Below are positions 7,631 to 52,196 of a DNA stretch of 64,000 nt, one piece after another. The position numbers were made by a program, and so were the translations under genes. The stretch lies in assembly GCA_964234715.1 (NCBI GenBank), contig OZ174280.1; one strand, written 5' to 3'. The DNA comes from Podarcis melisellensis. Taxonomy: Eukaryota. Position 1 is the first letter of the stretch; every line of letters starts with the position of its first letter. Under the pieces are notes generated by a model. It ran no database searches. It had not been told where the DNA came from and saw nothing but the letters and a program-made list of their open reading frames with translations.

Positions 7631-7954
7631 TTAATTGTATTTTAAGCAAATCTTGAGTTTTTGGAAGCAATGGAAGGTATTTAAGGTAAATGAGAGGGCC
7701 TGATATCATAGCATAGGATCCTTATTTATGAATTTTCTGAATGTTCTAGTGTGCCAGTCTGAAGGGTGCTTACCACAGCTTTTAACTCATAAGAAATGCA
7801 AGGGCTTTTGGGTTCTTATGAATTCAGCCTGACCCCCCAGACTCTTCTAAAGCAAAGTTGCCCTGTGACTTGTGAGGCTAAAGCTCCCTGATCTTTGAGG
7901 GTCTGTTTTGTAGTTTCAGAAAGCAGCCTTATATCAAACTGTTTGACTTTACAG

Positions 7955-8089
7955 TGCTGGATAAAAAATGGACAGAGTTGGACACCGATCAACATCGTAC
8001 CCATGCCATGAGGCTTCTTGATGGCCTGGAAGTCACTGCTCGGGAGAAAAGACTGAGGGTAGCCCGAGCCATCCTCTATGTTGCACAAG
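7955..8089 (+). CDS. STRIP1: STRIP1 exon 4
   Basis: cag|VLDKKWTELD...ARAILYVAQ|gtatac. Confidence 0.95.
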
Positions 8090-8682
8090 GTATACCTTTA
8101 TTACTGCCAGAGGAAATTCTCAGTTATGAAATGTTTGCTAGTTGCTGTGTAATGTCTTCATGGAATATTTATTAACATGGTACTTGAGTGAAACCAAGCC
8201 TGTTTTTTGAAAAAGAAAGAAAGAACAGAGATGAAGGAAATTTGTTTGTTACTACCTTTATTGCATAAATGACTGAGAGCAGTATCCTGCTAAATAGATC
8301 CACTAGTGCAGAGATTTCCACTTGTACAATGAAACCTCCTCCCTCTCTGCCAAATATGTGTGCCAAATCTGTTCCAGAGAGTTGAAGAGAAACCCAGAAC
8401 AGATTTAGGAGGTATGCAAGGAGAGGAGAGGATGGAGAACTTCTGTTGTACAAGCAAAAATCCTTGCACTAGCAGATCTATTTAGCTGGATACCACCCTT
8501 ACTCAGTTTCATTTTTATTTTTAGTTGTTTGGGGCTAGATTCTAGACTTACAGTCACTTTTCATAGTAAACCAAGATGGTTGTCCATCTTTGCTCATAGT
8601 GTGCCTGAACATCAGAGCTGACAGAGGCAGCAGTTTGTAGTTGACTATCACATATGTAGATATAATTAACCTGAGTAGTTGC

Positions 8683-9563
8683 TATTATTATCATCATCAA
8701 AGTTATATCCCACCCTTCCACTCAAAGGAGCCCAGGACAGCAAGCGCACAAATAATGAAACATTTAAAAGCAATTCCAATTGAAATGCAACCTGTAAAAG
8801 GCTTGCTGAAAGAAGAAGGTGCCAAAAAGACAACAGAGGCGGTCCCTGTGTAATATTTAATGGGAGGGAATTCCAAAGAATGGGTGCCACATCACAAAAG
8901 ATCTGATTCCTATATTTTGCAGAATGGTCTGACCCCCATGCTCAGTTAGTTATCTGCATGAGGCCCTCACCTACAGAGCAGTTATTTGTTAGGTAAATAA
9001 GGGGCAAGGCGATCTTTTGGGTATCCTGGTCCCAAGCTGTATAGGGCTTTATGCACCAAAACCAACACCCTGAACTTAGCCCAGTAACTAATTGGCAGCC
9101 AGTGCAGTTCTTTTAGCAGCTATGTAAGATGGTGGCAGTAGCCTGCCACAGTGAGCAGTCGAGCCATCTCATTTTGCACTACCTGCAGCTTCAGGACTAG
9201 CTTCAAGGGTTGCCCTGCATAGAAAACATTGCATTAATTCAGCCTGCAGATTACCAGCACATGGGTGACAGTGGCCCAGTCCCGAAATGGCCATAGCTGT
9301 CGTATTGGCCAAAACCGGTAGAAGGCACTCCTGGCCACTAAGAGCACTTGGGCCTCTACTGACAACTATGGATCTGGGAGCACTCCTGGATGAGCCTGCT
9401 CTTTAAGTGAGAGTACAACCCTATCCAAAGTAGGGAGTTGGCCAATTATTAAGAACCTGCCACCCAAAACACTTCCATCTTGCCAGGATTCAAAGTCAGT
9501 TTGTTGGCCCTCATCCAGCCCACCACCAAGTCCAGGCAGTGGTCCAGAGCTTGCATGGTCTCC
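8683..9563 (-). mobile_element. L2 (CR1-group) LINE 3' fragment, degenerate RT C-terminus
   Basis: Minus-strand peptide ALDHCLDLVVGWMRANKLTLNPGKMEV is typical of the L2 ORF2 'WM..NKL.LNP.KTE' motif; simple-repeat tail near 8683. Confidence 0.8.
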
Positions 9564-9953
9564 ATATTAGTACAGATGCATGATATTGCATTAGTGACAT
9601 ATTTCCATTGCACCAAATATTCAGGCAACAGAGGTTGTTCGGTGGGATTATCCCTTGAGATGTTGGTGTGATCAAGTGCCATCAAGTCCCACTGGAAGCC
9701 ATGTTTCGTTTTATAATTGTGTAACACTCTTGTTCTCTGTCCTGCAGCAGGTTCCAGATGCTGCAGGAAGCTGACATTCTAGCCGGTTGTTTTCATAGTA
9801 CTGTATTATAATTTTTGTGTTATTTTAATTTTGTGAATTCTCTGCCCTTAGGCATAAGAATCAGGAAAAACATATCAGTTATGAAGAACAATAACATGCT
9901 TTATCTGTAAAATGGAGAGCAAATTGGTATGATTTTTGTTTTTGTGGCTGCAG

Positions 9954-10074
9954 GCACATTTGATGAGTGCAGCTCTGAAGCTGAAGTTCAGTCCTGGATG
10001 CGATACAACATTTTCCTTCTGCTTGAAGTTGGCACATTCAATGCTTTGGTGGAACTTTTGAACATGGAAATTGA
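9954..10074 (+). CDS. STRIP1: STRIP1 exon 5
   Basis: cag|GTFDECSSEAEVQSWMRYNIF...LLNMEI|gtgagt. Confidence 0.95.
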
Positions 10075-10916
10075 GTGAGTTCCATGTTGCTGCAGAGTTG
10101 GGCCTCTGAGAGGAATGTAGGCTGTTTAGATAGCCTGGTTATGATCTGCCCCACCAGGGTATATATTTTTACAGCTTGTGAATGATCAGATGCCAGATTC
10201 ATTCTGGTATTCATCCAATTTTTATCTGATTCCATAGAAAGCCCTAGAGTTTAGGACTGGAGTATTAAGGCAGTAGGGTAACACTGCAAGTTCTTTTCAC
10301 CTACCTTTCCAGTATCTGATTAAGAAATGCTATCTTTCTGGTAATGGAAATAAAACAAGTAATCTAGAATAATTTTAATTTTAATTATTCATTTATAATA
10401 ATTGTATTAATATTATTAATGATACTATATTATAATACTTTGTAGTGCCAAACAAGAATCACTTACTTTTGAGGATGGCGTTGTTGTTCTTGCAGCTAAA
10501 AACTAAAACCGGTTCGATAGAAAGATTAGTATATACTGGACTCAGATGAATGCCTCTCTAGCCCACTCCTTTGATCTCAGTAGGATCAAAAATGTTCCTA
10601 CTCAGTTATCTAAAAAAAAAGGAACACAAAGTTTTATAGAATGTCTAGTAATTTGGTTCTATGGAGCAGATGCTTCTCTCGTAGTTGAATTCAGTCCAGT
10701 TTGTAAGATCTCATAGCAACTGTTTTTGGCAGCTGCTGTTGGATATGTAAAGGAATTAGAGCATGTGCAGAGTGGTGCCTAGCTGCAGAGAAAGGCCACA
10801 GGATATGCAAACTGTACGCTGCTGTTTTCATGTTATAATCTTAATGTGTAAAAAAAGCCTTTGATCCCAGATTGTAGGCAGCAAGAGCTAAGTTGATGTT
10901 GCTTCTTTTCTCTCAG

Positions 10917-10985
10917 CAACAGTGCTGCCTGCAGCAGTGCTGTGAGGAAGCCTGCCATCTCCCTGGCTGACAGCACCGATCTGAG
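10917..10985 (+). CDS. STRIP1: STRIP1 exon 6
   Basis: cag|NSAACSSAVRKPAISLADSTDL|gtgagg. Confidence 0.95.
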
Positions 10986-11187
10986 GTGAGGAATATTGGC
11001 ATATAGGCCACAGGTGTGATGAGATTTCCCTGTGAAGGACTCATGAGTTTAAAAGAATGCTTTGCTTTCCTTTCCTCCGCAGCCTTTCCTCTATTTGCAT
11101 ATTCTCTTGTGTTCTTTTGAATCATGGCATTTAGAGGTGGAAAGGACCTTTTACACCATATAGTGCAACTACAGCATAGCCTTCCAG

Positions 11188-11498
11188 CAGGGGTGGTAAT
11201 ATTTTTTCAGCCCGAGGGTCACATGCCAATAGTGGACAGGACAGAGGAAAAAGTGGGCAGAGCAACTAATGTGAATTTGTATACCTTTGTATACCAGGCA
11301 GTTTCTTCACACACATCCTTCTGTCTTCCATCCACGGAAGCAAGAAGCATGATCAGAGTTCAAGGGACATATTCCAGCTAGGCAAAACACTTAAGGAGAG
11401 GCCAGATGAGGGTTTATGGCTAAGGAAGAGACTTGAGTACCTGACAGAAAGGCCTGAGAAACTGCATGTGGCCTCAGGTCTGAGGTTGCCCATCCCTG
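11188..11498. mobile_element. Non-autonomous hAT-like DNA transposon
   Basis: Termini CAGGGGTGG...CCCATCCCTG; target-site duplication eroded. Confidence 0.55.
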
Positions 11499-11678
11499 CT
11501 TTAAGTATCTACTTGAATACTTCTCTGACATTTGCGCAAGAATGAGATTTATAGATTTGATGCAGCATACTGTTGTGCCTTAAGTTGTCTGCATTGATCT
11601 AATGGACTTGGGTGTGTGTATGAAAAGATAGGTAACCAAACCCAACGCATAGAGTATGTTAGGAAGAAACACTGTGTA

Positions 11679-11839
11679 CAGTGGTACCTTGGGTTACATA
11701 CGCTTCAGGTTACAGACTCCACTAACCCAGAAATAGTGCTTCAGGTTAAGAACTTTGCTTCAGGATGACAACAGAAATCAGTTTCAGGTTAAGTACGGAC
11801 CTCCGGAACGAATTAAGTACTTAACCTGAGGTACCACTG
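11679..11839. mobile_element. Tc1/mariner (pogo/Tigger-like) MITE
   Basis: TA|CAGTGGTACCTTGGGTTA...TAACCTGAGGTACCACTG|TA: terminal inverted repeats with TA duplication. Confidence 0.88.
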
Positions 11840-12265
11840 TACTAGCTAACACTGTGTGCTAGTGGCGGTGCACAGTATAATCACCTCATCTGTAGTGAAA
11901 CCTCTATAGCTGGAAAATGGCGAGTTCTTCCAGGAGATGCTTGTGGTTTATGTAAAGATACACCCACTAGAATGAGTACAATTTTTTTTTTAGCAATACA
12001 GGTTGCTAAGCAACAGTCACCTTGGCAATATAGACTGGGAGCAGGAGGAAAATGCTGGCTTCTTTCTGTAAAACTTGTCATCTTCTCGTTGTGCCAAGCA
12101 TATAATGTTGCTACTTCTGATGAAGCCGGGGGGGGGGGGGATCACTTGTGCACACTTTGCTAGTCTAGCCCCCTCTCTCCTACCCCTGCAGTTTTGAATA
12201 AGCTGAGCCATATTGTCAGAGTTTGCCTTTCTAACCTGCTTGGTCTTTGCAATCCATTTTTGCAG

Positions 12266-12372
12266 GGTGCTGCTGAATATTATGTACCTTATCGTAGAGA
12301 CTGTCCGTCAGGAATGTGAAGGAGACAAGCCTGAGTGGAAGACCATGAGACAGACCTTTAGAGCAGAACTAG
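12266..12372 (+). CDS. STRIP1: STRIP1 exon 7
   Basis: cag|VLLNIMYLIVETVRQECEGD...FRAEL|gtaagg. Confidence 0.95.
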
Positions 12373-12657
12373 GTAAGGATTCTGTTGCTGCCCATTTTGT
12401 GTTTGTTAAGGCTGTTTTATAAGTCTCTTGATTTGAAGTAGGTATCAGTAAGCCAGTAAGGTGCAATTACTTTGTTGCAAGAAAAACTGCCTAGCCAGGT
12501 GTGGAAAGGTATCTTTTTTCATTTGAGCTAAATGGGCAGGATGTTTAGAATTAAACTGAAGCAGGGACAGTGTATACATAGACCAGAAGAAATACAGTGG
12601 TTATGGACAATATAACGGCTGTTATGTTGGACCTACTAGTGAATTGACGGCAGAGGG

Positions 12658-12703
12658 TGGGGTTGGAATATATACAGCTGATGGGGTTGGAATATATACA
12701 GCT
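12658..12703. repeat. 24-bp tandem duplication
   Basis: TGGGGTTGGAATATATACAGCT(GA) x2. Confidence 0.9.
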
Positions 12704-12756
12704 AGAACTGAGGCATCTGCATGTAACAAGGCCATCACCAATGTATTGCCTTTCAG

Positions 12757-12884
12757 GGGCACCTCTGTATAACAATGAGCCATTTTCCGTGATGCTCTTT
12801 GGAATGGTGACCAAATTCTGCAGTGGCCATGCCCCACACTTCCCTATGAAGAAGGTGTTGCTGTTGCTCTGGAAGACTGTCCTG
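12757..12884 (+). CDS. STRIP1: STRIP1 exon 8
   Basis: cag|[10 protein letters not shown]...[12 protein letters not shown]|gtaaga. Confidence 0.95.
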
Positions 12885-14483
12885 GTAAGAGGTTGTTGCC
12901 TACGAATAATTGGTCTTTTAACAGATTGCTTCTTTTGCTGTAACTAAAAACTCTGTCCCCTTGGGATATAACCAGGATTACACAAAGTGATGTGGTGCTG
13001 CTGTTTTAATTTCTTGACTGAGATCAGTTCAGAGACAAGCATGCTTAGCGTTTAAGCTGTAGGACATGCATAGGTCCAGAGTCATTTTTATTATTAAAAG
13101 CTCTATTGTAGCTAACCAATAAATGTAAACCACTACAAGGACGTCTGTGTGTTGTATGATAATACCCTAGGTTGAGTTTGTCACCACCATTGAAAAATCT
13201 CGTGGAAACTTTGCAATACACAGCAGTGGAGTTTTGGGGGTGGGGATATTATACCCACAGGCACAGGACCAGTCCCTTTTCATGCACTGTGCAGTGCACC
13301 TACAAGCTATGAACAGTGCTGGGTTGAAGCAGGATCTTAGATGGTGACTTGAAAAAAAAATCCCTTACTGATCTCTTCCATCACTGTTGACAAAACACAC
13401 AGGAGAGCTGCTCTGTAATTTGTTGGGCTTATTCAACTCCTTTCATATATGTCCTGGTAATGCCATTTGGTACATCCCTGTAGCAGTACTGCTGGTTTCT
13501 TATGCTGGCTGCTAGCTGAGTCTGGGTATCCTCAGGGCTTTTCGATTGCTTGAAAATAGCAGATGGCATCATGGATCCAAGCCTGAGCAAATCAAGCTGC
13601 CATTGACACATTGGAAGGAAAATCATTATTAATATGAAATGAGGCTTCTGGGTTGTTTTGTTTAAATTAACAAATTTATAGATATTTTGAAACTCGGAAG
13701 AAAGAGATGAATATTTTCTTGCTAACTAAAGTATCTTAGGAAGAGGTTCAGTTTACATGGGAATCCTAGGACTGACAAAGAAGCACACTTGCTGGCCTAA
13801 ATTTGAAAACCAGGCAGTCCATAATTTTATTTAATTATGAAATGTTTATCCCACCACACCAAAATGTTTTAATTTTTCATATTTAAATAAACGATTTCTG
13901 GATATTGACTAGAAAAGTTTCCCAGGTTAGTTAATAAATGGACTTGCAGTGCACTAATGCATAATCTTTTTAAAAAAGAGCACAGGAATAAAGAAGTTAT
14001 TTTAGTTGGTGACCTAATGAAACTCGTACTGCATACATTTGGCTTACCTTTTCTTTTTCTTTTTGAACTGCTGAAATGTATAGTTTAAAGACAGTGGTGC
14101 TACAACTAGGATGCTATAATATAATCCATTTGTGGATGATAAGGACATATTTTTCAGCTGACTAAATGATCATGAAATCAACAAAGTGCAATTTTGTTGC
14201 TAGTTTTCAAAGGACCTACTTCTGTGATCAGTTCAATGTGGTCCAGCTGCCACTCAGCTAAACACACCTATTTCAGATAAGCCTACCTGGCTTTTCCAGA
14301 GTTCTTGGTGTTCCTCTGGCTGCCGAGTAAAGAGCATAATAGTACAGATACCACAGACAGGTATCATATGCTACTGTTTAAACTAAAGTGGTCTTTCCCT
14401 GTCAGTGAGTGGATGAAAATTGCCCGGAAGTCTCATGTAAGCCCCTCTGAACTTCTTGAAGAAAGAGAAGGATATGTTAAATA

Positions 14484-14688
14484 CAGTGGTACCTTGGTTT
14501 TCGAATGTAATCCATTCCAGAAGACCGTTCAAGTTCGGAAATGTTCAAAAACTGAAAGCTCAATAGCCAACAGCTAGGCCTCAGGATCTTGCACTCAGCA
14601 GAAGCTGCATGGCATGTTCGACTATCGAGGCATGTTGGAAAACCAAAATGTTCATCAACGGAGATGTTCCAAAGCCGAGGTACTACTG
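14484..14688. mobile_element. Tc1/mariner (pogo/Tigger-like) MITE
   Basis: TA|CAGTGGTACCTTGGTTTTCGAA...CCAAAGCCGAGGTACTACTG|TA. Confidence 0.85.
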
Positions 14689-15003
14689 TATGTGTGTCTG
14701 CTAGGAATGTGGAACTCTCAGCTTCATGAGCGAGTGTCTTTAACTTCATTTGTTTGAAAGTTAGCTGTGAAAATGTTTCATATGAGCACAAAGACAGGTT
14801 TAAAATGCTATGTCCTTTGGTCTCTGCTGTGCCTTCTCATATACACAAATGGTTCTTTGAAGAATGATAGACATTCCTATAACTGCAGCAAATCCTCCAT
14901 TCCTCCGTCTTGGTTTACCTTTAACAAACTGGTTTTTGAAGGGTTTATGAGTGACCAAAGAGATAATGAAAGTGTATGACATGCAATTATCCTCTTGCCG
15001 TAG

Positions 15004-15186
15004 TGCACCCTTGGAGGATTTGAGGAACTCCAGGATATGAAAGCAGAGAAAAGGGAGATGTTGGGGCTCCCCCCACTTCCTGAGGATAGCATAAAAGTGA
15101 TTCGCAACATGAGGGCTGCCTCCCCTCCAGCATCTGCTTCTGATTTGATTGAGCAGCAGCAAAAACGGGGTCGTCGAGAGCACAAG
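15004..15186 (+). CDS. STRIP1: STRIP1 exon 9
   Basis: tag|CTLGGFEELQDMKAEK...RGRREHK|gtaagt. Confidence 0.95.
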
Positions 15187-15297
15187 GTAAGTCAGGGTAC
15201 AATCCGGGTTGGATGTAATCTTCCTTTGTTTAGGAAGACACTGAACTTAAGGAGAAGGCAGACTATAACATCATTTGCTGTGTGTGTATTCTTCCAG

Positions 15298-15515
15298 GCT
15301 CTTATTAAACAGGATAACTTAGATGCCTTCAATGAGCGAGATCCCTACAAAGCTGATGACTCCCGGGAAGAAGAGGAGGAGAATGATGATGACAATAGTC
15401 TTGAGGGAGAGACATTCCCTCTTGAAAGAGATGAAGTGATGCCCCCTCCTATCCAGCACCCACCGACTGACCGACTGACTTGCCCAAAAGGTTTGCCTTG
15501 GGCACCCAAGGTCAG
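15298..15515 (+). CDS. STRIP1: STRIP1 exon 10
   Basis: cag|ALIKQDNLDAFNERD...KGLPWAPKV|gtgagc. Confidence 0.95.
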
Positions 15516-15867
15516 GTGAGCACCTGTACAGGGTTGTTGTATTTAAAGCAAATCCCAGAACTGAAAGGCTCTCATCTTCAGCCTTAAACCAGTGCTCAAC
15601 TACTTGGTTAATGCGCCTGATAGATTACTGAATATGATAACTATAATGAAATACATGCTCCTGCTTCTCTCATTGACATTGTGATCATGTTTGGGAGCCT
15701 TTATGTCTTTGAGGATGCTTGAGATCAGAAGAGCCATTCTCATTTTTTGTGTGTCTAGAATATAAAGGAACTTCATCTCTCCAGGGCTTTGTGGTGAATG
15801 AAATATGTAATAAACTTGAGGAGCCCTAAAGTTCTGTCTGAATATGATTCTCTTCTCTTTTCTTCAG

Positions 15868-15933
15868 AGAAAAAGATATTGAGATGTTTTTGGAATCAAG
15901 TCGGAGCAAATTCATTGGCTACACCTTGGGAAG
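15868..15933 (+). CDS. STRIP1: STRIP1 exon 11
   Basis: cag|EKDIEMFLESSRSKFIGYTLG|gtgagt. Confidence 0.95.
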
Positions 15934-17130
15934 GTGAGTTAATGGAGCCCCAAATTTGTTGCCTCTTAGCTTGTTTGTAGTGGATCTCTTCTTACTATGC
16001 AGCTAATGTGTTGAGTAACTGGCGACATACACTTTTTCCTGAAAAAAGTAAAGACAGCAAGTTGTTCAGGCTTTGTTATTTTTTTAAACATTCACGCAAT
16101 CGTTTCTCATCCTGTGTTAAGCCACTACTGTGATACTGTTCGGACACTGAGTTTCTGCTGCCCATCTTGTCAGCTCCTGAAATCTCAGGAGGTCTGGGCA
16201 TGCAATCATACATGCATCTCAAAACTATAAATGCAGCTATAATGTTTTATGGTATTGTGCTGTAATTTGAGTAACCAAAAGGACTAAAATACTTAAACAA
16301 CAAAAAACACACACACGCAATATTGCTATGGACAGATGAAGAATAGGACCAGGAAAAGACTTAGGACACCCACCTTGTGTAGAGTTGCTAAATAAATTAG
16401 CATATCAAGTAGTAACAGACATTTTCCAGGCTTTTGGCTGGTACAACTAAAAGCTTAATAGGAATGGTGGAAACCTGCTATGCTAAGTCACAAAACCATA
16501 TTGCAGAGGGTACATATGAACTACAGATTGAATCCAGATAACCAAACTTTTTCCAAGTCTAAGAAATCATAATTCTTTCTTTATTATGTATTAGTGCTTC
16601 ATTTTAATAGGAAAAAAAATCTTAACTTTTAGATGCATCCAATTAGATCCTCCTATTTATTTTAGGTTCTGTTCCTGATGCATAACTAATTACACAAACT
16701 GAACATTCTTTAAAATCTAGCATGCTTTTATATTTTAAAGTTGAGAGGAAGGTTCCTATAATTTCCAAGCATTCCTGTTTTTTAGGTTGCTAGGTAGCCT
16801 GAGAGAATCATATCTGAACTTACTAGTGAACAATTTTTATTGGCTCAATAGGAGCAGGAAGCTCTTGCACAAATGAAAGCGATTTTTTTCTTAGACAATT
16901 TATCAGGACATGCCTAGCAGGTCTTATAAGCTGCCCTGTGATCCTTGGATGAAGGGTGGTACAGAAATTTAATAAAATAAAATAAGGTGCTATTTGAAAA
17001 CATTACAGAGAGAAGAGTGAAATCCCTTAATCAGATTGACTAGCTTCCTATTCACAATTTTACCAGAATAGCTCATTTGTATCACTTACAATATTTACTG
17101 GCTGACTGGTTTTGCTTTCACCCCCTCTAG

Positions 17131-17194
17131 TGACACTAACACAGTCGTGGGGCTGCCTAGACCCATTCATGAGAGCATCAAAACTCTTAAGCTG
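17131..17194 (+). CDS. STRIP1: STRIP1 exon 12
   Basis: tag|DTNTVVGLPRPIHESIKTLKL|gtgagt. Confidence 0.95.
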
Positions 17195-17362
17195 GTGAGT
17201 ACTCACTGTGTGGACTTCTTAATTTGCATGTGTAGAAGACATCTCATCTAATTGGTTACTGCTTGTCCAGGCTAAGAAATATATTCTAAGCAGAAAAAGT
17301 GCTTGAATTTATGGTGCTGCCAAGATGATGAGGTTAACTTTCTCTGCCTGGTCTCTTTATAG

Positions 17363-17434
17363 CACAAATATACATCTATTGCTGAGATTCAAGTACAAAT
17401 GGAAGAAGAGTATCTGCGTTCTCCCTTGTCAGGG
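17363..17434 (+). CDS. STRIP1: STRIP1 exon 13
   Basis: tag|HKYTSIAEIQVQMEEEYLRSPLSG|gtaagt. Confidence 0.95.
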
Positions 17435-17749
17435 GTAAGTATCATAGGGCAAATGTTCAAAAGGGGGAAGACGTGGTTTAGAAAGCATGTGCATGAAGAA
17501 GTGGAAGGAGAAAAGTGTGAATCTCTAATTTGGAACTGGACATTTGGCTGATCTTTGCTATCTGCATATGCTGTGAGTTGGTCAAAGAGTTGATCCCTCC
17601 TGATTCCTAACCTGCAAATCAGATTATTGGCTTTGGATCATGAGAACTCCACCCATGAGACACTCTTATTGGAAAGAGAGACTTAGGATCCAACCCTTAT
17701 GTGGTATGATGCTGTGCAGCTGCCTCTGGAAGGAGTTCTTTATTAAGGA

Positions 17750-17936
17750 AAAACAAAACAAATTTCCTTCCAGTAGCACCTTAAAGACCAACTAAGTTAG
17801 TTCTTGGTATGAGCTTTCGTGTGCATGCACACGAAAGCTCATACCAAGAACTAACTTAGTTGGTCTTTAAGGTGCTACTGGAAGGAAATTTGTTTTGTTT
17901 TGACTATGGCAGACCAACACGACTACCTATCTGTAA
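17750..17936 (+). mobile_element. Penelope-like element remnant with inverted 5' end (perfect 152-bp palindrome 17750-17901)
   Basis: GCACACGAAAGCTCATACC...TAAGGTGCTACTGG...GCAGACCAACACGACTACC matches the recalled lizard Penelope pseudo-LTR; flanked by the 14-bp direct repeat CTTTATTAAGGAAA (17738-17751, 17937-17950). Confidence 0.85.
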
Positions 17937-18052
17937 CTTTATTAAGGAAAGTTTTGCTGAGTTTCTGGATGAATGCTCTTAATATTCAGACTAGCTTAGC
18001 ATGCACTTGAGGTAGGAATGAATGATGCTATTATCTCTTTGTGTTAATAAAG

Positions 18053-18127
18053 GGGGAAGAGGAGGTTGAACAAGTTCCTGCAGAAATCTTGTACCAGGGT
18101 CTACTTCCTAGCCTGCCACAGTACATG
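18053..18127 (+). CDS. STRIP1: STRIP1 exon 14
   Basis: aag|GEEEVEQVPAEILYQGLLPSLPQYM|gtgagt. Confidence 0.95.
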
Positions 18128-18445
18128 GTGAGTTAGTTATAGTTTCCTCCTAATGTTCATTCCCAAGGCTTCAGCACACCCTTTTCCCATTTCTTAAACT
18201 CTAGCCTCTCTACCATTTTCAAGATGGGAGAAATAGCTAGACTCAGTTTGCATTTCACTGCTGGCTTATGCAAACTCCCATTCTGATATATATCTTCTTT
18301 GCTTGCCAGTATGTGACAAGCTATTTCCTTCAATGTTTCATGTTCATCTCTTCCCGTTATCTGTGTTTTTGAGTTTCCTTCTCCTCTTTCCTGTTCTTTG
18401 GCACTTCTGAAAACCTTCTTTGCTTCACTCAACTTTCACCCACAG

Positions 18446-18543
18446 ATCGCCTTGCTGAAGATCCTGCTGGCTGCAGCCCCCACCTCCAAGGCCAAGACCG
18501 ATTCCATTAACATCCTAGCAGATGTTTTGCCAGAGGAGATGCC
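18446..18543 (+). CDS. STRIP1: STRIP1 exon 15
   Basis: cag|IALLKILLAAAPTSKAKTDSINILADVLPEEM|gtgagt. Confidence 0.95.
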
Positions 18544-19425
18544 GTGAGTCTTATTCTTAGGGGGAAAGCATATGGTGAATGAAGGGCAAAGGCAATGAAT
18601 GGATGTTTACTTGACATTCAGTGGTTGGGCGTTGAGTGGGCGGGCTGACATTTATTTGTATATTTAGACATTCCTTTCCTGCTGTTCTTTATAAAAAAAA
18701 TTCCAAATGCTTTTCATATGATGGAAAATTTGATTGTCTTGATCCTTGCAAAATGATGTGTGCAGCCTAGAATTAAGAGATCTGGTAGCAGAGAAAAGAA
18801 GTGTTTGGACTGAACCTGGAAAGCTGTTTTAAAACAGGTCTCCTTAGAAATAGCAGGCCTCTTAAGTATGGAGAGGGATGTTAAGTTAGCAATCTCTTGA
18901 GAAGCTTCAAGGCAGCTTAAGTGGTGATGCTTGTGCTTCAATAGAAGACCTTTTTTCCTGAATTTGAATGTGTCATTAATACATGGACAGTACTTCTCCA
19001 TGTCTGGAGCAACAAAGATTTCATAAGATTGGTAAATAGGTTCTGCCACATAGCATACATGGGTTCAAGGCAGTACTTTTTTCTTTTAAACTTTTGTTCT
19101 GCACAGTTCATCCTGAAGTGCTTATGTTGGCAAATGGAGCCACACACAGCTTGTTGAATTCTTCATTTTATTGACATATTAAACAGAGTCAGGAAGGGCT
19201 TGAAGAAAAGTATTGAGGAGTTGCCATCTCTTCCTTGATCACCCATATATTAACTAAAATTAAAGCAACCTTCTTCACTGGCCTATAGAAAAGAGAGACC
19301 ATAAAGTGCTACTTAAAGGAGAATCGCCCTAAAATATAAATAATAGCATTAAGCACAGACAGATCTGCCCTACCACAGTCACCATCACAGGCCGTCGAAG
19401 CTAATATTGCTGCTTTGCCTTCCAG

Positions 19426-19552
19426 AACAACTGTGTTGCAGAGTATGAAACTAGGCGTTGATGTGAATAGGCACAAAGAAATAATTGTAAAGGCCATTTC
19501 TGCTGTTCTGCTTCTACTGCTTAAGCATTTTAAGCTAAACCATGTCTATCAG
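19426..19552 (+). CDS. STRIP1: STRIP1 exon 16
   Basis: cag|TTVLQSMKLGVDVNRHKE...LNHVYQ|gtaagc. Confidence 0.95.
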
Positions 19553-19661
19553 GTAAGCATGAAATGGCATGAGCAATCAGCATTGGAATTGAAAGAGAGA
19601 TTGAAGTGAATCTGGAATTTGCTTGGCTAACCATTCTTACCACATCTGTTTCCTGCTCCAG

Positions 19662-19762
19662 TTCGAATACATGGCCCAGCACCTAGTGTTTGCCAACTGC
19701 ATCCCCCTTATACTGAAATTCTTCAATCAAAACATCATGTCATATATCACTGCCAAGAACAG
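19662..19762 (+). CDS. STRIP1: STRIP1 exon 17
   Basis: cag|FEYMAQHLVFANCIPLILKFFNQNIMSYITAKN|gtaggt. Confidence 0.95.
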
Positions 19763-20348
19763 GTAGGTGGGAATATCTCTAGCACACCTGTATCCCAAAA
19801 TGCTATGACAGGAAATGTGACACACTATCTTTGCAGTGGGACACCTAGATGATATCCAGATGGGATATCTAAGAATAACTAGTTATCCTCCACAATTTTA
19901 ACTTGCAGAAAGGAAGATGTTTCATCCCACTGATAAACAAAAACCTGCTGAGAAATCATTCATCTCTACCAACACTACTACTTGTCTGTTAAATGGATAG
20001 CTTTAAAATGTGCTTGTTTGAAAAGACATTGAGTGACTTTCATGTAGATCCCATGGTCATGAGTGTTACTGAACTCAACAGACACCATTGTCCTAGTGGA
20101 CTAAAACAGTTGGTTGATCTGCTTATTTTTCTTGGCAGCAGGTAAGTATCTGGGATAGGTAGATATAGAAAGATGTTCATGCATGAAGCCTCTTGGTCAG
20201 TGCCAACTGAATAGCAGCGGGTGGAGATGATATCACAATCATTTTTCTCATATGTTTGAACCTGCAAGGGGCAACCATTTTGGACACGGTATATTTGACT
20301 AGATAGGTCATCCATTCTGATCCATTTGGGGTGTTTTGTGTTTTTTAG

Positions 20349-20415
20349 CATCTCTGTTTTGGATTACCCATACTGTGTGGTGCATGAGCTGCCTGAGCTG
20401 ACTGCAGAGAGTCTG
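20349..20415 (+). CDS. STRIP1: STRIP1 exon 18
   Basis: tag|ISVLDYPYCVVHELPELTAESL|gtgagc. Confidence 0.95.
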
Positions 20416-20540
20416 GTGAGCTAAACTGCCTGGACAGAAACATATATAGCCGAGGGGTGGAGATGGCATTGTCAATAAGGGGCAATTTCTCACTTTCCTT
20501 ACTTGGTAATATTTCCTTTGTTTTGCTTTTTTTCCTATAG

Positions 20541-20645
20541 GAAGCTGGAGACAACAATCAGTTTTGCTGGCGAAACCTGTTTTCTTGCATTAATCTACTT
20601 AGGATACTGAACAAATTAACAAAGTGGAAGCACTCAAGGACTATG
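20541..20645 (+). CDS. STRIP1: STRIP1 exon 19
   Basis: tag|EAGDNNQFCWRNLFSCINLLRILNKLTKWKHSRTM|gtgagt. Confidence 0.95.
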
Positions 20646-20784
20646 GTGAGTAGAAGGGCCTCCTCTCATAGTGCTGTTAAGGCTTTATTGATCATGTACC
20701 ATCATTTTGGCCTTAAGCAAATGGATGTTGACCAAGGCACAGATGAAGTCTTAGAAAACTGAGAATGTTCCTTTGCTTTCTCAG

Positions 20785-20989
20785 ATGTTGGTGGTATTCA
20801 AGTCTGCACCCATTCTGAAACGAGCCCTCAAAGTGAAGCAAGCCATGATGCAGCTTTACGTTTTGAAGCTTCTCAAAGTGCAGACCAAGTATTTGGGGCG
20901 ACAGTGGAGGAAGAGCAACATGAAGACCATGTCAGCAATCTACCAAAAAGTGCGGCACCGGCTCAATGATGACTGGGCTTATGGCAATG
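20785..20989 (+). CDS. STRIP1: STRIP1 exon 20
   Basis: cag|MLVVFKSAPILKRALK...LNDDWAYGN|gtatgt. Confidence 0.95.
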
Positions 20990-21194
20990 GTATGTCCTGG
21001 ATCTGTCTCTCCTCTTTCCACCCACTCAAAGTCTTTCATAAGCCTTTAACTGCTATGCCAAGCCAGTTCCCTTAAATCACCCATCTGCCTTCCTGTTAAC
21101 AGATCCCATCAGAAATTGCTAGGAGCGCATGGTGATGGCTCCACAGAGCAAGCTGAGGAATGTGCTTCCCCACCTCTAAATTGATGTTGCTTGT

Positions 21195-21310
21195 TAGACA
21201 GTGTGGTACAGTAACTATAGTGTTGAACTTAATACATGTTCAGATCCTTGCTATGAACCATATAGTGTAGTCTTGGACAAGTCACTGGGTCTCAGCCTTA
21301 AACCTATTTT
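21195..21310 (+). mobile_element. Old MIR/CORE-like SINE fragment, interrupted by the following MITE
   Basis: tRNA-like head and TTGGACAAGTCACT...CTCAGCCT core-like motif. Confidence 0.45.
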
Positions 21311-21313
21311 CTA

Positions 21314-21550
21314 CAGTGGAACCTCAGTTTTTGAGCATCTCGGAAGCTGAATGATTCGGAACACAAACACAGAAAACCTGGAAGTGATTGATTCTGTTTT
21401 CAAACGCGCCTTGGAAGTTGAACTGCTTCTGCTGCATGTTTTTCCATTTTGTCAATGGATTTTGCTGACCGCCCATTGATATTTAGTTTTGGAACGTTTT
21501 GGAAGTCAGTCTTCTGAAACGGATTACATTCGAAAACCGAGGTTCCGTTG
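21314..21550. mobile_element. Tc1/mariner (pogo/Tigger-like) MITE
   Basis: TA|CAGTGGAACCTCAGTTTTTGA...TCGAAAACCGAGGTTCCGTTG|TA. Confidence 0.82.
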
Positions 21551-21819
21551 TACTAGAGTGGCCATAAAGGACAAGATGGAGTCACTCCATACTTCTTCAT
21601 AGAAGGTTGGAGTAGAAATGTGAGATATTATTGATGTCTGTGTCTGCTGGGAAGTCCCTTTGCATCTCATCCCTAGAAGTTGTATTTCTTAAAGATCTGC
21701 CAAATGGGATGACATAATGCTGGACTGCCTGTATAACATTGTAGGGCGTTTTCATTGTGAGGGTATGACTGGAGCTCTTCTGCTCCTTCAGCTGATTGTT
21801 TGCTTCATGACTTTTGCAG

Positions 21820-22067
21820 ATCTGGATGCACGTCCTTGGGACTTCCAGGCTGAGGAGTGTGCTCTGCGTGCCAGCATAGAGCGTTTCAACTCTCGCCGTT
21901 ACGACCGGGCACATAACAATCCTGATTTTCTACCTGTGGATAACTGTTTGCAGAGTGTTCTGGGCCAGCGCGTAGAACTGCCTGAAGATTTCCAAATGAA
22001 TTATGACTTGTGGCTGGAAAGGGAAGTTTTTTCTAGACCCATCTGTTGGGAAGAATTGCTCCAATGA
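21820..22067 (+). CDS. STRIP1: STRIP1 exon 21 (terminal coding part)
   Basis: cag|DLDARPWDFQAEE...PICWEELLQ* (TGA ends 22067). Confidence 0.95.
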
Positions 22068-24030
22068 CGTTTGAGAAGAGGGAATCGGAGCTAGTACGTG
22101 TGCCCAAGGACAAGGCAGCTTCTCTTTGGTCAACCGGGCATAGAGAGAAGAGATAAAACTGGTTTTTCATATGGCTTGTAATCTGCAGTTCTTTCCTTCT
22201 CCTCCAGGTGGCGGCATGGATTTATACTGCTCTCAAGGTCCTAGCAAATATGGCTTTCCTACATCTTTTCGGCTGCTTCAATTACTGATTGGTTTAGAAG
22301 GTGCTAAATGGATTCAGAGTAGTTCACTTTGAGACTCAGATCAATTGAAAAACGCTGAGCAAAATACCAGTGTCAGCTTTGATGCTATTCACGTGATCCT
22401 TGTTGGGCTTCTGTCCTTTGACATTGGCCAGCTGTTCTGTTCCAAAAGTAGTATGGCAGCTTTTTTCTGCTATGCCCCCACTCTTATCCCAAAAGGACAG
22501 AACCCTTTCTCTGTTAGCTGCTAGGATGGAAAACAGTGGTGTGAATGAAAGGAGAAAAGATAGATGGTGCATACAGTTGTCCATACTAATAGGAAAAGGA
22601 GCTATCTGGAGTCCCATCTAGTGCATGTAGGGAGCTTGTATAATTGAGAGGATCGGGAGCAGGGAATAGGATGTGTTCATAGCAGCTGCTTCCACTCTCA
22701 TCTGGTGGCCCTTCACAGGGAAGGCAATTTAACTGGATCAGGGATGTTACCCTCTTTTGTTCCTGTAGTGGCACCAAACATCTAAACAACTGCTGATCAT
22801 GTCCCAGTATAATTGAATATTAATATCTATTTCTTTCCATTGAGCAATCTTCTGTTTTGAAGGCCACCAGGGAAAGAGAAACTCTTGACATTTTCCCATT
22901 TCCATCAATGTGCCATTCTTTCTTCCTTCGTTTGCTTGAAAGCCTCAATTTTTGAATAGCTTTGCTGCACAGATGTGCATGCCAATGTAGTTTGCTTAAT
23001 CTGACCCCTTGCCAGGGCACCTTGTTTGTGCCTGAACTTCTTGGTTAAATGTCGCATAATCCTAGTCTCCTCAGTCTGGATGTTGGTGACCCAGGCAAGT
23101 AACTCATCCTACCTTGATGCTCCATCCCAGTCTAGTTCACATAAACAGAAGATGAAGTGGCAAGCCTGTGTCTGGACTTTCCCACTGCAAGTCACACCCA
23201 CAGCCATCTGGAATAGTACTGTCAGTCCAGACAAAGGTTTGCCACTTCCAATGATGTTTTGTAAGAACCTAGTCTCTGGGTTCTTGCAAAGCAGGACTGT
23301 GAATGTGGTAGAAGTAAAGGCATTTACTTTAAGTACATAAGTGGACCTGACAATAAAGTAGGTGCTTTCACTTCCCTAGGAGATGGTATCTGCTCTGAGA
23401 AGACTCACAACCAAATCTAAGTGTAGCCTGTTGTATTTATAAACATTCAGGAACAGGCAAGTACAGTAGGTCATCACCAGGTGCAATACAGTAGAATGCA
23501 TTTTCCTATTTGTTTGTTTGTGCTTTGTAGTCTGATTATATGCTCAGGCTACAATTCTAACATATTTGGAAGAGAGCCCCATTGAACAGGCCTCCTGAGT
23601 AAATATGTTTAGGTCTGGGGTGCTACTGTGGGAGTGGGTGGGACTGCTCCAGCACTCCACATTGAGCCTTGATTACTTGTCCCCAAACACTCCCAGCTGT
23701 TTAACTTTCATCGCTGAGGTTACAGAGTGTCTCTCAGGCAGACAGCAGCAGGGACCAAGACACACAGTGTCAGCTTAGAATAAGTATCAAGTTTTAGCAA
23801 AGCCAATTCATTTGTTTTGAGCAAATGTCACCAGGCAGACATTTGCTCACAAATTGTAACGTAGCTACAGATGGGGCTCCAAGCTTCTTCAAGGTGTAAC
23901 ATACTGAGACCGTAGGGCTTCCCCCTCCCCATCTCTGCATTGTTAACAGTGTGATGGTGACATGATCATGCAACAGAAGCACATGGTCGCATAAAAGAAT
24001 GAACAAGCATTAAAAACAACAAAATGCCTA
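22068..24030 (+). other. STRIP1: Putative STRIP1 3' UTR
   Basis: Largely repeat-poor sequence after the stop; candidate poly(A) signals AATAAA 23352-23357 and ATTAAA 24009-24014. The true end is unknown. Confidence 0.45.
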
Positions 24031-24847
24031 TCAACTTACAGTGGCTACTTTTGTGTATGAATCCTGAGATCTGTACGTATCTCCTGGAAAGAAATCCAGA
24101 CAATTTCTGCTCACTGGAAATTAGGGACTTCAGTGGGTGAGTACAGCATCTTTCTGGCTTTGCCCTCCTACTCACAGACCTCATAGAGCCTGGTGGCAAA
24201 ATTAGCACCTGGGTGGATGTTGCCTCTTGACAGATGCAGCAGATAAATAACTCTTCTTCCCTGGGTTCAGTCAACCTGTCTCTTGGCTTACACCTCAGCT
24301 ATCTCAATTCCTCTATACCACAATGGGAGATAGAACTGGAGACATGGGGGGCGAAGACCTGATTAGCCTTCCTAGGTTGAATTGGCAGTATTTGGGGGAG
24401 GCCTGGTTGCATGGTGGTTCCTTCATATGTACTTGCTCAGCTTATCTGTAGAATTTCTAATACCGGCAAACATCTTTTTTACCTTCTGGAACACTACACT
24501 ATTGGATTTTGTGTTTAAATTACAGTGACAATGAAATCCAGCTATTATGGATAAATTATTCTGTGAGCACTTGCTGGTCTGTGACACCGCTGATGGGGAC
24601 AGCTGCATGATGGGGACAGACTGCAAACTTGAAAGCTGCCTTTCTCTCCCCCACAAGTGCATTGATGTCTGTGGATGGAGAGGAAGGATACTTGCATTTT
24701 CCTTAGTCATTTCAAGCAATCTGGGTTATGTACTACAGAAATGAACCAGGGATGTAGGCAGTTAAGATCCCTTCCAGCACAGTCCCCTTGCAGTAGTAGA
24801 TTTGTTCACTACTTAAAGTTTTAATAGAAGACTCTAACCAGGGAGAA

Positions 24848-25083
24848 GAGAGCTTTCCAAACTTTTTATATTGGTGACACCCTTTTTAGACAGGTATCAC
24901 TTTGCGATGTAGTAAATTCATTTTGCATCATTTCACAACACAGTAATTGTTTTACTAGCAAACCAGAGGTTAAACTTAACCTCTTTTTAGCCTCGGGAAC
25001 AGCATGGGGAGCATTCATGTGACACGCCGACACACTGCAGCCGACACACTGATGTGTCGCAACACACAGTTTGGAAAGCTCTG
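24848..25083. mobile_element. Non-autonomous hAT-like DNA transposon
   Basis: Terminal inverted repeats AGAGCTTTCCAAACT...AGTTTGGAAAGCTCTG. Confidence 0.75.
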
Positions 25084-25199
25084 TGGTAAAGTAAGGAATT
25101 GCAAACTGTGGACAGTATCCAGCTAACATGTCCCATCATCACAAGGATTTATACTTACCCCCTGCACATGCCCTGAAGGGGTTGTAGGAACCCCTAGAA

Positions 25200-25335
25200 A
25201 AGGCTTCCTCAACCTCGGCCCTCCAGATGTTTTGAGACTACAATTCCCATCATCCATGACCACTGGTCCTGCTAGCTAGGGGTCATGGGAGTTGTAGGCA
25301 AAAAACATCTGGACGGCCGAGGTTGAGGAAGCCTG
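25200..25335. mobile_element. hAT-type palindromic MITE with 8-bp target-site duplication
   Basis: AGGCTTCCTCAACCTCGGCC...GGCCGAGGTTGAGGAAGCCTG flanked by CCCTAGAA (25192-25199, 25336-25343). Confidence 0.9.
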
Positions 25336-26129
25336 CCCTAGAACATATTTAAGGGGCACACAGGTGGAAATCCTTGTGCTGGAGGGTTATGTTACTCAGG
25401 GTTACTTTAGATAACCCAGTTTTTTATTATTAACTCCTACTTAATCCTCAAAAAAACACACCAACAACACCTCAGGGCATCTCAATATAAATAATTTTAA
25501 ATGGCAGTGAACAGTTTTATGCCTTTTCTGTGTGATCTCTAATCTTTCTGAAATGTGTCTAGCAGAATTGCTCTAATAGTGTACAAAGTTAAATTCTTGC
25601 TAAGCTGCTCAGACTATGGTTTTCCTTGTTGAAAAACGAGAAGAGTCTCATAGCAGTGTAATTAGATAAGAAGAAAAAGTTCCCCTTTCTGGAAATGAGA
25701 CAGCGAGTTTATTCTATTTATTATGAAGATTTATGTTCTACCTTTTTACACAATACCTAAGTTAAGGTACTATCAAGATAAAAATACACCATAATACAAG
25801 AGAATGGGCAGTCACAAGTGGGGAGAGTGCTCTTTGACTCATGTCCTGCTTGTGGGCTTCCCATAGGTATTTAGTTGGTCACTATGAGAACAAGACGATG
25901 GAATGAAGAGCTTTTGGCCTGATCGAACAGGGCTCTCCTTACGTTCTTAATATCATATGAATCCTGCCCCTCAGTTGCTTTGTTTTCTACAAAGGTAAAG
26001 GCCCAGAGATGATGTATTGATGACTGGAATTCATAAGCAGGTTTTGAGAGATGAATTGATTCATCTAATAATACTTGGAGTGCAGACAAGGCACACTCAG
26101 GCTGCTCCTTTGGCCCAGAGGCAACTCAT

Positions 26130-26407
26130 CAACATTTTAGTGCACATTTCTCCAGATGTAGTGTTTTGTGTGCAACATTCCCCAGTATACACATTTTTGT
26201 ATGCTCACTTCACTAACATAGTGCGTTTCTATGCACACTTTCTCCTAATGTTTCTGTATTTTGGCAGACATCATTTCACTGCATTGCAAAATGCAGAGAA
26301 GTGTGAATTTCAAAGAATATCGATTTCAGTTTGTGCTGTATCAGGAAGTGCAAATTAGGGAGTAATCATATCAAAGTGCAATCTGAATTGAAATTATCCC
26401 CCATCCA
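26130..26407. mobile_element. Partial lizard interspersed repeat (hAT-like end ...CCCCCATCC), homologous to 35281-35707
   Basis: Shared ~30-bp internal 'CACATTTTTG..TGC' subrepeats and shared terminal region between the two copies. Confidence 0.6.
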
Positions 26408-26439
26408 AACTTCCCCCCTTTGTTCAACTGCTAAAGTTC

Positions 26440-26565
26440 ACAGTGACCGGCCGTGGTAGAATTATGACATCAGAGGAAAATCAGCCAATCGCTGCCTTCC
26501 TTTTTTGTCCCTTCGCATTCCCTCATTCAGGCAGGGCTTGATTTACTAGCCCATCGAACAAGGCA
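26440..26565 (+). promoter_or_regulatory. Putative UBL4B proximal promoter
   Basis: CRE-like TGACATCA at 26465-26472 and CCAAT at 26485-26489, about 80-100 bp upstream of the ATG; no CpG island. Confidence 0.5.
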
Positions 26566-27138
26566 ATGCTGCTCACAGTGAAGAGGCTGCTTGGGCAGCA
26601 GTGCCGCCTTCAGGTATCTGGTGAGGAGAGGATCTCTCTGGTGAAAAGCCTGGTGTGTGAAGAGCTCAATGTCCCTGAGAACCAGCAGACCCTGTTGTTC
26701 CAGGGGAAAGTGCTGGAGGGGGAGCACAAATTATCAGACTATCTCATTGGCCCAGAGTCCATCCTCTATCTGGTCATTAAAAAACCTGAGCAAGCTCATC
26801 CTGAGGCGCCCTCAAAGCCGACGGCTGCCCAGCCCCACTCAGTGTGGTATCGACTCTCGCAAGTCCTGGAGAAACATTTCAGAACTTCCGACGCAGTGAG
26901 GGTTCTCGAGCGGGTGCTGAACGACTACTACAAAGGCCTTGGCTTGCTGAGCCTGGAAAACATCGAAGAGTTAGCAGGGGACCTCCTAAGTCCCAAGGAA
27001 GGTGAAGGTGAACCGGTGGCTACAGGTGAGCAAAAGGGGCAACCCAAAACCCCAGTGTCTGAATCCAGGAAGGATAAAGCGACCCAGACTGAGCCACAAG
27101 AAATGCTAGGAGGAAGGTGGTGCTGGAAGAACTCTTGA
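26566..27138 (+). CDS. UBL4B: Ubiquitin-like protein 4B-like (UBL4A/GET5 family), single exon, 190 aa
   Basis: N-terminal UBL domain (MLLTVKRLLGQQCRLQVSG...QQTLLFQGK...LSDYLIGP) plus UBL4-family C-terminal domain (VWYRLSQVLEKHF...SLENIEELA). Intronless, located between STRIP1 and SLC6A17 as in mammals; ATTAAA at 27169-27174. Confidence 0.85.
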   Translation: MLLTVKRLLGQQCRLQVSGEERISLVKSLVCEELNVPENQQTLLFQGKVLEGEHKLSDYLIGPESILYLVIKKPEQAHPEAPSKPTAAQPHSVWYRLSQVLEKHFRTSDAVRVLERVLNDYYKGLGLLSLENIEELAGDLLSPKEGEGEPVATGEQKGQPKTPVSESRKDKATQTEPQEMLGGRWCWKNS

Positions 27139-28574
27139 GTAGACTTATTTAGAGAGGTCTAAGCGAAAATTAAAATAGTGATGGTGTATGGAACATGGAG
27201 CTGTGTCTTTATGTACCAAGGAGGAAGGAGGTTTAGTAAATGAAGATGACCATTTTTAAAAGGACCAGAGCTTCAGTTGGTATTGAAACTAGTGCTGTGC
27301 CAGATTTTTCACAGGCAAACAGTTTTGGCATGAAAGGGAAAGCTAAAAGTTCACTCAACAGCCCCTGAATGTGTTTACCCTTACTGACTGCTGCTTTGGT
27401 GCCATTCCCCCCCCCCTCCACCCCGCCCCAGGCATCTCATTTCTGGCTGTGTGATCCCAGCTAACTGGCTGCCTTGTTCCTAGTGTGGTGATGCCATGGC
27501 ACCACACAGCAAATCAGAGCTGGCGATGTCCAATTTTCCTAAGGCCAAATGAAGCCCTAATTTACACTCACTCTTGAGTGAAGGAAGCCTGCATTGCCTC
27601 AGTGCTCCCTGTGTTATCATACTGTACTGGCCATTTAATTGTCTGACAGAACAGTAAGGCAGGATGCATCAGCACCATTGTCTTGGCAGCAGGTTGATAT
27701 GTTCTGTCTTCTCCCACAAATAGGTTTTTTTGGGGGGGAGCCACACCCTGAAAAATCACCATAAGTGGGGCATTCTGAGGGAGGTGCAAAAAGACCTATG
27801 AATACAGTCCCCCCGTTTCAGACCTGCCTCTATCATAGGTTTATCTCCTCCACCGCTACCATCAAACTAGGCTTGTATCTAGGTACATGTAAGGCAGCAT
27901 GTGCTTCACTGATACATGGTCCTTGGTTCCATCTTTGGCATGGCTATTTAAAATACTGGTGTCCAAACAGTGGAAGATCTCTAGCAAGACTACATGAACT
28001 GGTTGAGCCTGAAAGCCCTGGTTGAGATGGACAATTGTCCTTGTACACCCTCTCTCTGTACATTGAATCAAACATCATTTTCTTAAAGTCAGTGTGTCAT
28101 ATGGGAGCATATGGCTGGCTGGCTTCCCAGGACCACAGGCAGGAATTCTAGCATTTCTGTGGCAGCTTCCCAATTTTGTGCTGGAGCTGAAGCAAACAGT
28201 TGAAGAACGATTCCCAGGATCCATTTTACATGTTTCCCCCAGCAAATGTATTGGATTCTGCATGAAAAGTGCCTGTTCCCCTACCTCCAAGTAGAGCTAT
28301 TCCACTCCACTTCCCAAGAAAGCAGTCTCCCAATTAGTAGTGGGTTGTTGTTTCTTCACATATACTAAGCTGGTATCAGCAAGCTGCTTCTGAAATGCTC
28401 GTTTTGACATGGTTCCCAGCTTGTCATTGCGTTCCTCCACTGAGTTAACTACCCAAGAACTAACCCAGAAGTGAAGGAATGTTTTCAGAACTGGAGATTA
28501 AAACTGACATTTCACTACAGAGGTAGTGGGGCAATTAAAGCACCAGACTTGTGAAGAGTGCTACACCCTGCTGT

Positions 28575-51800: not shown

Positions 51801-51916
51801 GATGACCAGGATCTGAGAGCTGACCTTCAAAACCTGCAGATTCCCCCTCCATCTTGGGCTTCCCTCTGCCCCCAAAATCCCTTCCTACATAGGAGTGGCT
51901 GAGCCAGACAGTCTCA

Positions 51917-52196
51917 ATGCCTAAGCACAGCAAAGTGACCCAGAAGGAACAAAGTACTGAGCATGTCACTGAATCAGTGGCTGATCTCCTGGCCCTTGAG
52001 GAGCCTGTGGACTATAGACAGAGTGCCTTAAATGTGGCTGGAGAAAATTGGAACAAGCAGCAGGATGTGGATGACACTGGTGAGGATCGGCCAGCGTGGA
52101 ACAATAAACTGCAGTACATTTTGGCTCAGATTGGCTACTCCGTGGGGCTGGGGAATGTCTGGCGCTTTCCATATTTGTGTCAAAAGAATGGTGGAG
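51917..52196 (+). CDS. SLC6A17: SLC6A17 first coding exon (exon begins at 51793 with 5' UTR)
   Basis: Acceptor ttttcag at 51792; MPKHSK...CQKNGG|gtaagt. Confidence 0.95.

Follow-up and report, generated by a model that had tools for sequence, protein, structure and literature searches.

A selected, intronless UBL4B gene at the mammalian address in a lizard, and the age of an "X-derived" retrogene

UBL4B is regularly cited as a retrogene that moved from the X chromosome to an autosome and compensates there for the meiotic silencing of the X. How old this gene is, and whether it could have arisen before there was an X to leave, are questions raised by a 64,000-nucleotide stretch of the Podarcis melisellensis genome (contig OZ174280.1 of assembly GCA_964234715.1, hereafter the window), in which an intronless UBL4B lies at 26566-27138 on the + strand. 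The occurrence of the gene in reptiles is already known, and the lizard UBL4B is an annotated, published member of a known family. NCBI uses the name UBL4B in more than 15 lepidosaur species, among them lacertids (five besides the present one), other lizards, geckos and an amphisbaenian; paralogs of 156 aa are annotated separately as UBL4A, and the tuatara homolog in UniRef carries no name. According to Yu et al. 2021 (PMC8267814), UBL4B is found "in reptiles and mammals", and the Anolis carolinensis UBL4B is listed there as gene 100554680, on chromosome 4, with one exon. They keep the label "X-derived retrogene", with an age of at least 170 My for which they refer to Yang et al. 2007, and do not discuss what a reptile ortholog implies for the dating. 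Among the papers searched, we likewise found none concluding that reptile UBL4B shifts the date of the retrogene.

Gene, product and constraint

The coding sequence (26566-27138, + strand) is an ATG-initiated single-exon ORF of 190 codons plus stop, preceded by an in-frame stop 8 codons 5' of the ATG. Its product combines the two domains by which the UBL4 family is recognised, namely an N-terminal ubiquitin-like (UBL) beta-grasp domain at aa 3-73 (26572-26784; Pfam PF00240, 53.6 bits, E 2e-14) and a C-terminal TUGS (BAG6-tethering) domain at aa 94-139 (26845-26982; Pfam PF17840, 48.8 bits vs a cut-off of 27.7, E 7.8e-13), both matches being well over the curated cut-offs. A preliminary description of the locus had read it as an uninterrupted 190-aa single-exon ORF with a UBL and a C-terminal domain, and the ORF list and the Pfam ubiquitin and Tugs matches agree with that reading. 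Human UBL4A (PDB 7ru9) aligns with aa 1-147 of the lizard protein (E 1e-32), and the UBL4A C-terminal domain (PDB 4x86) with aa 92-144. An AlphaFold model, for which 15 lepidosaur sequences served as alignment input, displays a confident beta-grasp domain (pLDDT 81-92), three helices in the TUGS region (93-104, 107-122 and 130-141) and a tail that is disordered from residue 143 (pLDDT < 50); the closest known fold is that of the human UBL4A UBL domain (2DZI, rmsd 1.0, 56% identity). This tail (26983-27135, + strand), predicted to be disordered and without a UBL4A counterpart, holds the motif ATQTEPQ at aa 172-178 (27079-27099), whose A-T-Q-T core does not vary among the 15 lepidosaur proteins compared, including that of tuatara.

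The lizard protein is 94-97% identical to the NCBI "ubiquitin-like protein 4B" of Zootoca, Lacerta and Podarcis. Its best match is that of Zootoca vivipara (94-96% identity), whose 90% cluster also contains Lacerta agilis and three Podarcis species. The exact protein encoded in the window was absent from a collection of 15 billion proteins. Relative to Zootoca, Lacerta and Podarcis, the window protein carries a private deletion of three residues (LPQ) in the tail, in the region of 26998-27006 (aa 155/156), together with several tail substitutions.

We compared the coding DNA of eight squamates, i.e., the window, Zootoca, Rhineura, Elgaria, Tiliqua, Sceloporus, Anolis sagrei and Eublepharis. 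The single-exon ORF is intact in all seven species other than the one in the window, and pairwise Nei-Gojobori dN/dS values across the 28 squamate pairs lie between 0.10 and 0.27 (median 0.20), while dS between the window and Zootoca is 0.096. By region, dN/dS across the eight squamates amounts to 0.10 for the UBL domain, 0.09 for the TUGS domain, 0.29 for the linker and 0.44 for the tail. The preliminary description had called for dN/dS to be estimated across squamates and had held that disrupted ORFs in relatives with a ratio near 1 would refute its reading; with all eight ORFs intact and a median of about 0.20, the data came out on the other side. Taken together, this pattern of substitution indicates that UBL4B is functional and has been under purifying selection for roughly 200 My of squamate history. 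We also observed that the ATQT core is fixed although the tail is the fastest-evolving region of the protein.

Outside of the coding sequence, the eight squamates share an invariant upstream block, AGAATT.TGACATC ... CCAATC, in otherwise poorly alignable DNA. It is located at 26458-26495 on the + strand of the window and includes a CRE/ATF-like octamer, TGACATCA (26465-26472), and a CCAAT box (CCAATC, 26485-26490), the two elements being about 20 bp apart in all eight species. Both motifs lie 100-111 bp 5' of the ATG in seven of the eight squamates, the exception being Sceloporus, in which an insertion moves them to -167. Their conservation suggests that these motifs act as the UBL4B promoter, which may drive germ-cell (CREM-type) or ATF-type expression. 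On the other side of the gene, an AATAAA or ATTAAA is found 15-95 nt after the stop in every one of the eight species. The poly(A) signal that had been noticed in the window about 30 nt past the stop is an ATTAAA at 27169-27174 (+ strand), 31 nt after it and the sole poly(A) hexamer in the 660 nt that follow the stop. Rather than a decaying retrocopy, UBL4B is thus a conserved transcription unit of compact size. In the mechanism that we propose, this unit would comprise about 0.7 kb, with a short CRE/ATF-like and CCAAT promoter, the 573-nt ORF and the poly(A) signal.

Derivation from UBL4A

UBL4A is the partner of BAG6 and GET4 in the triage of tail-anchored proteins, its UBL domain binding SGTA and its TUGS helices binding BAG6. 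Squamates encode a separate UBL4A of 155-157 aa that is about 55% identical to the UBL4B of the same species. When the Zootoca gene was located by tblastn, its UBL4A was found in four coding exons spread over 6.5 kb, on a chromosome record other than that of UBL4B, with introns near aa 17/18, 51/52 and 119/120. UBL4B reads through all three of these positions, and the absence of all three introns is as expected for a processed copy. Exon counts of one for UBL4B and four for UBL4A are also given in Table S2 of Yu et al. (PMC8267814). The best explanation is thus that UBL4B is a processed (intronless) duplicate of the four-exon UBL4A.

One might instead consider that UBL4B began as a DNA-level duplicate of UBL4A which later lost all three introns, a possibility with which the surroundings of the gene are in keeping, as neither a poly(A) remnant nor a target-site duplication is visible near UBL4B and no A-run of at least 8 occurs between 26 and 30 kb. 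These hallmarks of retroposition are, however, expected to be missing after more than 250 My under either reading. A DNA-level duplicate would moreover have had to shed the three UBL4A introns at once, and the neighbours of UBL4A were not copied along, UBL4A and UBL4B being on different chromosome records. We consider such an origin highly improbable, and hereafter treat UBL4B as a retrocopy.

A more distant UBL4-like gene was encountered in a metagenome, at 2351-3098 of the 3.3-kb contig Ga0126362_10002930. It displays 36% identity and apparently contains an intron; presumably it derives from a eukaryotic microbe or an invertebrate and bears no relation to the question of UBL4B.

Genomic address and date of origin

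The window was described beforehand as holding UBL4B on the same strand between STRIP1 and SLC6A17. Upstream, this was borne out by the verified STRIP1 exons, which extend from 7882 to 22064 on the + strand. N1221-family exons were identified with Pfam at 7882-8172 and 9911-10075 (+), and the last exon (21693-22064) is about 91% identical to residues 756-837 of human STRIP1 (PDB 7k36, E 1e-48), i.e., the C-terminal 82 residues, and stops at the same residue. A CpG island at 4-5 kb is likely the STRIP1 promoter. The same arrangement is found in Zootoca and Eublepharis, where UBL4B is preceded on its own strand, at a distance of 5-7 kb, by the end of a gene encoding an N1221+DUF3402 protein of 822-824 aa. 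Downstream, five exons of an SLC6 (SNF) transporter gene follow each other in profile order (Pfam SNF; 51893-62585, + strand, running off the window), with the CpG island of this gene at 39-41 kb and no other gene-like ORF in the window between UBL4B and the SLC6 promoter. The strand and the transporter family therefore stand as described, and the name SLC6A17 is given by position and published synteny rather than by a direct ortholog test, the nearest solved relative of this gene being SLC6A20/XTRP3.

No homeobox motif is present in any frame of the whole window, and ALX3 is therefore absent, including from the gap between STRIP1 and UBL4B (22065-26565). This agrees with the loss of Alx3 reported in Anolis, chick and frog by McGonnell et al. 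2011 (PMC3166657), from the slot between Slc6a17 and Fam40a. Fam40a is the old name of STRIP1, and the Anolis synteny reads Slc6a17-[Alx3]-Fam40a (PMC3166657).

In mammals, the order along cattle chromosome 3 is KCNC4, SLC6A17, UBL4B, ALX3, STRIP1 and AHCYL1 (PMC7655849), and the order in mouse is Slc6a17, Ubl4b, Alx3, Strip1 and Ahcyl1 (PMC4244117). The synteny check suggested by the preliminary description thus gave a positive answer: UBL4B is found in the STRIP1-SLC6A17 interval in cattle, in mouse and in the window, and the lizard gene occupies the position between STRIP1/ALX3 and SLC6A17 known from the published mammalian orders. Apart from the known loss of ALX3, the lizard has the same order (STRIP1-UBL4B-SLC6) as cattle and mouse. 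The strand of mammalian UBL4B relative to its neighbours is one that we take to be shared with the lizard. Given the shared address and strand, a single old retroposition is the most economical reading. Judged by synteny alone, it is likely that UBL4B had a single origin in or before the amniote ancestor, and that the lizard and mammalian genes are orthologous.

Therian sex chromosomes and meiotic X silencing have been dated to some 180 My ago, later than the divergence of monotremes (PMC2276528). A retroposition before the mammal-sauropsid split would precede the therian X, so that the parent gene was, as far as anyone can tell, autosomal at the time. Potrzebowski et al. (PMC2276528) place a burst of gene export at about 180 My ago, in a dating scheme that also covers branches predating the X.

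The same address could also have been reached twice, if UBL4A gave rise to one retrocopy in the lepidosaur (or sauropsid) stem and to another in the mammalian stem, and both inserted into the same interval and survived there. The lizard gene would then be an analog of mammalian UBL4B and uninformative on its age. Such a coincidence has a low starting probability: for a second independent insertion to hit a target of roughly 30 kb within a genome of some 1.5 Gb, the prior would be about 1e-5 to 2e-5. In addition, the NCBI naming pipeline pairs the lizard gene with UBL4B and not with a "UBL4A-like" gene.

We further weighed this possibility by phylogenetic analysis, using an alignment of 53 rows and 157 columns under LG+C20+F+G4. 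It contained lepidosaur UBL4B and the UBL4A of fish, a caecilian, monotremes, marsupials, eutherians, turtles, an alligator, an ostrich and squamates, without mammalian UBL4B; great-ape UBL4A clusters (P0226 and P0227) were left out of all alignments. In the free maximum-likelihood tree, lepidosaur UBL4B forms a clade (100/100) on a very long stem (0.92) that carries a long-branch warning. The clade attaches at the base of the tetrapods, where the tree is unresolved, and is excluded from both squamate UBL4A (95/88) and sauropsid UBL4A (92/79); the latter exclusion is at odds with a separate sauropsid retrocopy. By the AU test, a clade of UBL4B and squamate UBL4A is not rejected (p 0.39). In a constrained test, UBL4A was fixed to the species tree and the UBL4B clade was placed on each of five stems in turn (lepidosaur, sauropsid, amniote, tetrapod and mammal). 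The five placements are within 1.6 lnL of each other and all belong to the confidence set (AU p 0.18-0.60), with the lepidosaur stem (lnL -4949.69) and the sauropsid stem, as expected of an independent retrocopy, nominally the best. With the placements so close and 157 columns to separate them, the tree that had been proposed as a check is too weak to decide the question. The preliminary description had held that a grouping with squamate UBL4A would argue for an independent retrocopy, and on this point the free tree places the clade outside, with the grouping not rejected by the AU test.

Individual character states offer a second view. UBL4B has V26 and S28, as does the caecilian, where all amniote UBL4A have L and R; fish UBL4A share V26 with UBL4B but have E at position 28. 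UBL4B also has H91 and V93 where all sauropsid UBL4A have P and I (platypus UBL4A also has H91), and its G19 can be derived in one mutational step from the ancestral E and in two from the sauropsid P. These residues suggest that the copy separated from UBL4A earlier than the substitutions common to all sauropsid UBL4A. Conversely, L2 and I23 are common to UBL4B and squamate UBL4A, as a separate retroposition in the lepidosaur lineage would predict. On balance the character states lean towards an old origin, on the strength of few sites with conservative changes.

The distribution of the gene among amniotes and other vertebrates bears on both the number and the age of the events. UBL4B is unlisted for chicken, painted turtle, Xenopus, zebrafish and gar in Table S2 of Yu et al. 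(PMC8267814). Our profile word search did not find UBL4B in turtles, crocodilians, birds or snakes; the same search returned the UBL4A of several snakes and the UBL4B of other toxicoferans (Varanus, Elgaria and iguanians), and UBL4B may thus have been lost in snakes. When the UBL region of a turtle UBL4A was used as the query, UBL4B was not among the best 120 of 300 matches, which comprised UBL4A of monotremes, marsupials, eutherians, ostrich, caecilian and fish. Multi-repeat polyubiquitins crowded the 150 matches listed for a full-length profile against 50% representatives, in which UBL4B appeared from two lepidosaur representatives, and mammalian UBL4B was absent from the matches listed in the word, profile and metagenome searches alike. 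Given the search negatives and the missing entries for chicken and painted turtle, a single origin needs at least one loss, in the turtle-archosaur lineage. Separate retropositions in lepidosaurs (or sauropsids) and mammals would need no loss to account for the absence of the gene from turtles, crocodilians and birds. Weighing this economy, the nominally best placements and L2 and I23 against the shared interval, the free tree and the older character states, we regard two separate retropositions as unlikely.

An origin even earlier than the amniote ancestor, in early tetrapods or before, is another way to account for the caecilian-like V26 and S28, and the tetrapod-stem placement is just 1.0 lnL below the best. 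A teleost gene labelled "UBL4b", with a human ortholog on chromosome 1, was moreover described in 2013 (PMC3890633), and could be an older or independent fish UBL4B-like gene. That gene adjoins acsl2, however, outside of the STRIP1-SLC6A17 block. Counting against so early a date are also the missing entries for Xenopus, zebrafish and gar, and the larger number of losses it requires, repeated in amphibians, turtles, archosaurs and possibly snakes. We consider a pre-amniote origin quite unlikely.

We thus favour, as a fairly likely history, one retroposition from a then autosomal UBL4A, more than 300 My ago on the stem of the amniotes, with the gene kept independently under purifying selection in lepidosaurs and mammals and lost elsewhere. 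The losses in this history would concern turtles, archosaurs and perhaps snakes, and the gene that persisted would carry a compact CRE/CCAAT promoter and, in lepidosaurs, a tail with the TQT motif. Of the initial proposal that the retroposition predates the X, the intact, intronless and selected gene at a shared address is upheld, whereas the sequence trees do not place the clade. Concluding from synteny that this "out-of-X" retrogene is older than the X is reasonable.

Proposed function and comparison with known systems

By analogy with UBL4A, the lizard UBL4B most likely still joins the BAG6 complex. Its TUGS helices would engage the C-terminal domain of BAG6 and its UBL domain would recruit SGTA, as the roles of these domains in UBL4A suggest, while the disordered tail with its invariant TQT motif is predicted to add a lineage-specific partner site. 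The lizard gene is presumably expressed in testis. If it is a true ortholog, UBL4B is older than the therian X by over 100 My and the "escape" explanation of its origin falls, which would fit the knockout puzzle. With an origin in the amniote stem, the initial selective value of the copy would have been unrelated to meiotic sex-chromosome inactivation, and its role in the therian testis would have been acquired later, by co-option. A dating before the X would amend the history of one gene, and does not reveal a new principle.

Among known systems, the closest is mammalian UBL4B itself, the "X-derived" post-meiotic testis retrogene, which like the lizard gene is intronless and encodes UBL and TUGS domains with a C-terminal extension. 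Both lie in the STRIP1(/ALX3)-SLC6A17 interval and bear the same NCBI gene name. Unlike in mammals, the lizard interval lacks ALX3, and the lizard parent gene is not on a therian X. UBL4A (GdX), of the BAG6-GET4-UBL4A pre-targeting complex, has the same domain order as lizard UBL4B but ends in ...MGFLD at about the equivalent of aa 150, whereas the tail of lizard UBL4B is about 45 residues longer, and the UBL4B clade differs from it by clade-specific replacements (L9, Q11, G19, T42, Q46, V49, E51, G52, I66, Y68 and K73). Feature look-alikes in the ESM Atlas were confined to UBL4A and Get5-like clusters, Get5/Mdy2 scoring 0.77. This yeast protein, a UBL protein linking Get4 to Sgt2, is a distant functional analog, but its UBL domain is flanked by Get5_N and Get5_C domains and it has no TUGS domain. 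Lizard UBL4B does not belong to the Get5 family.
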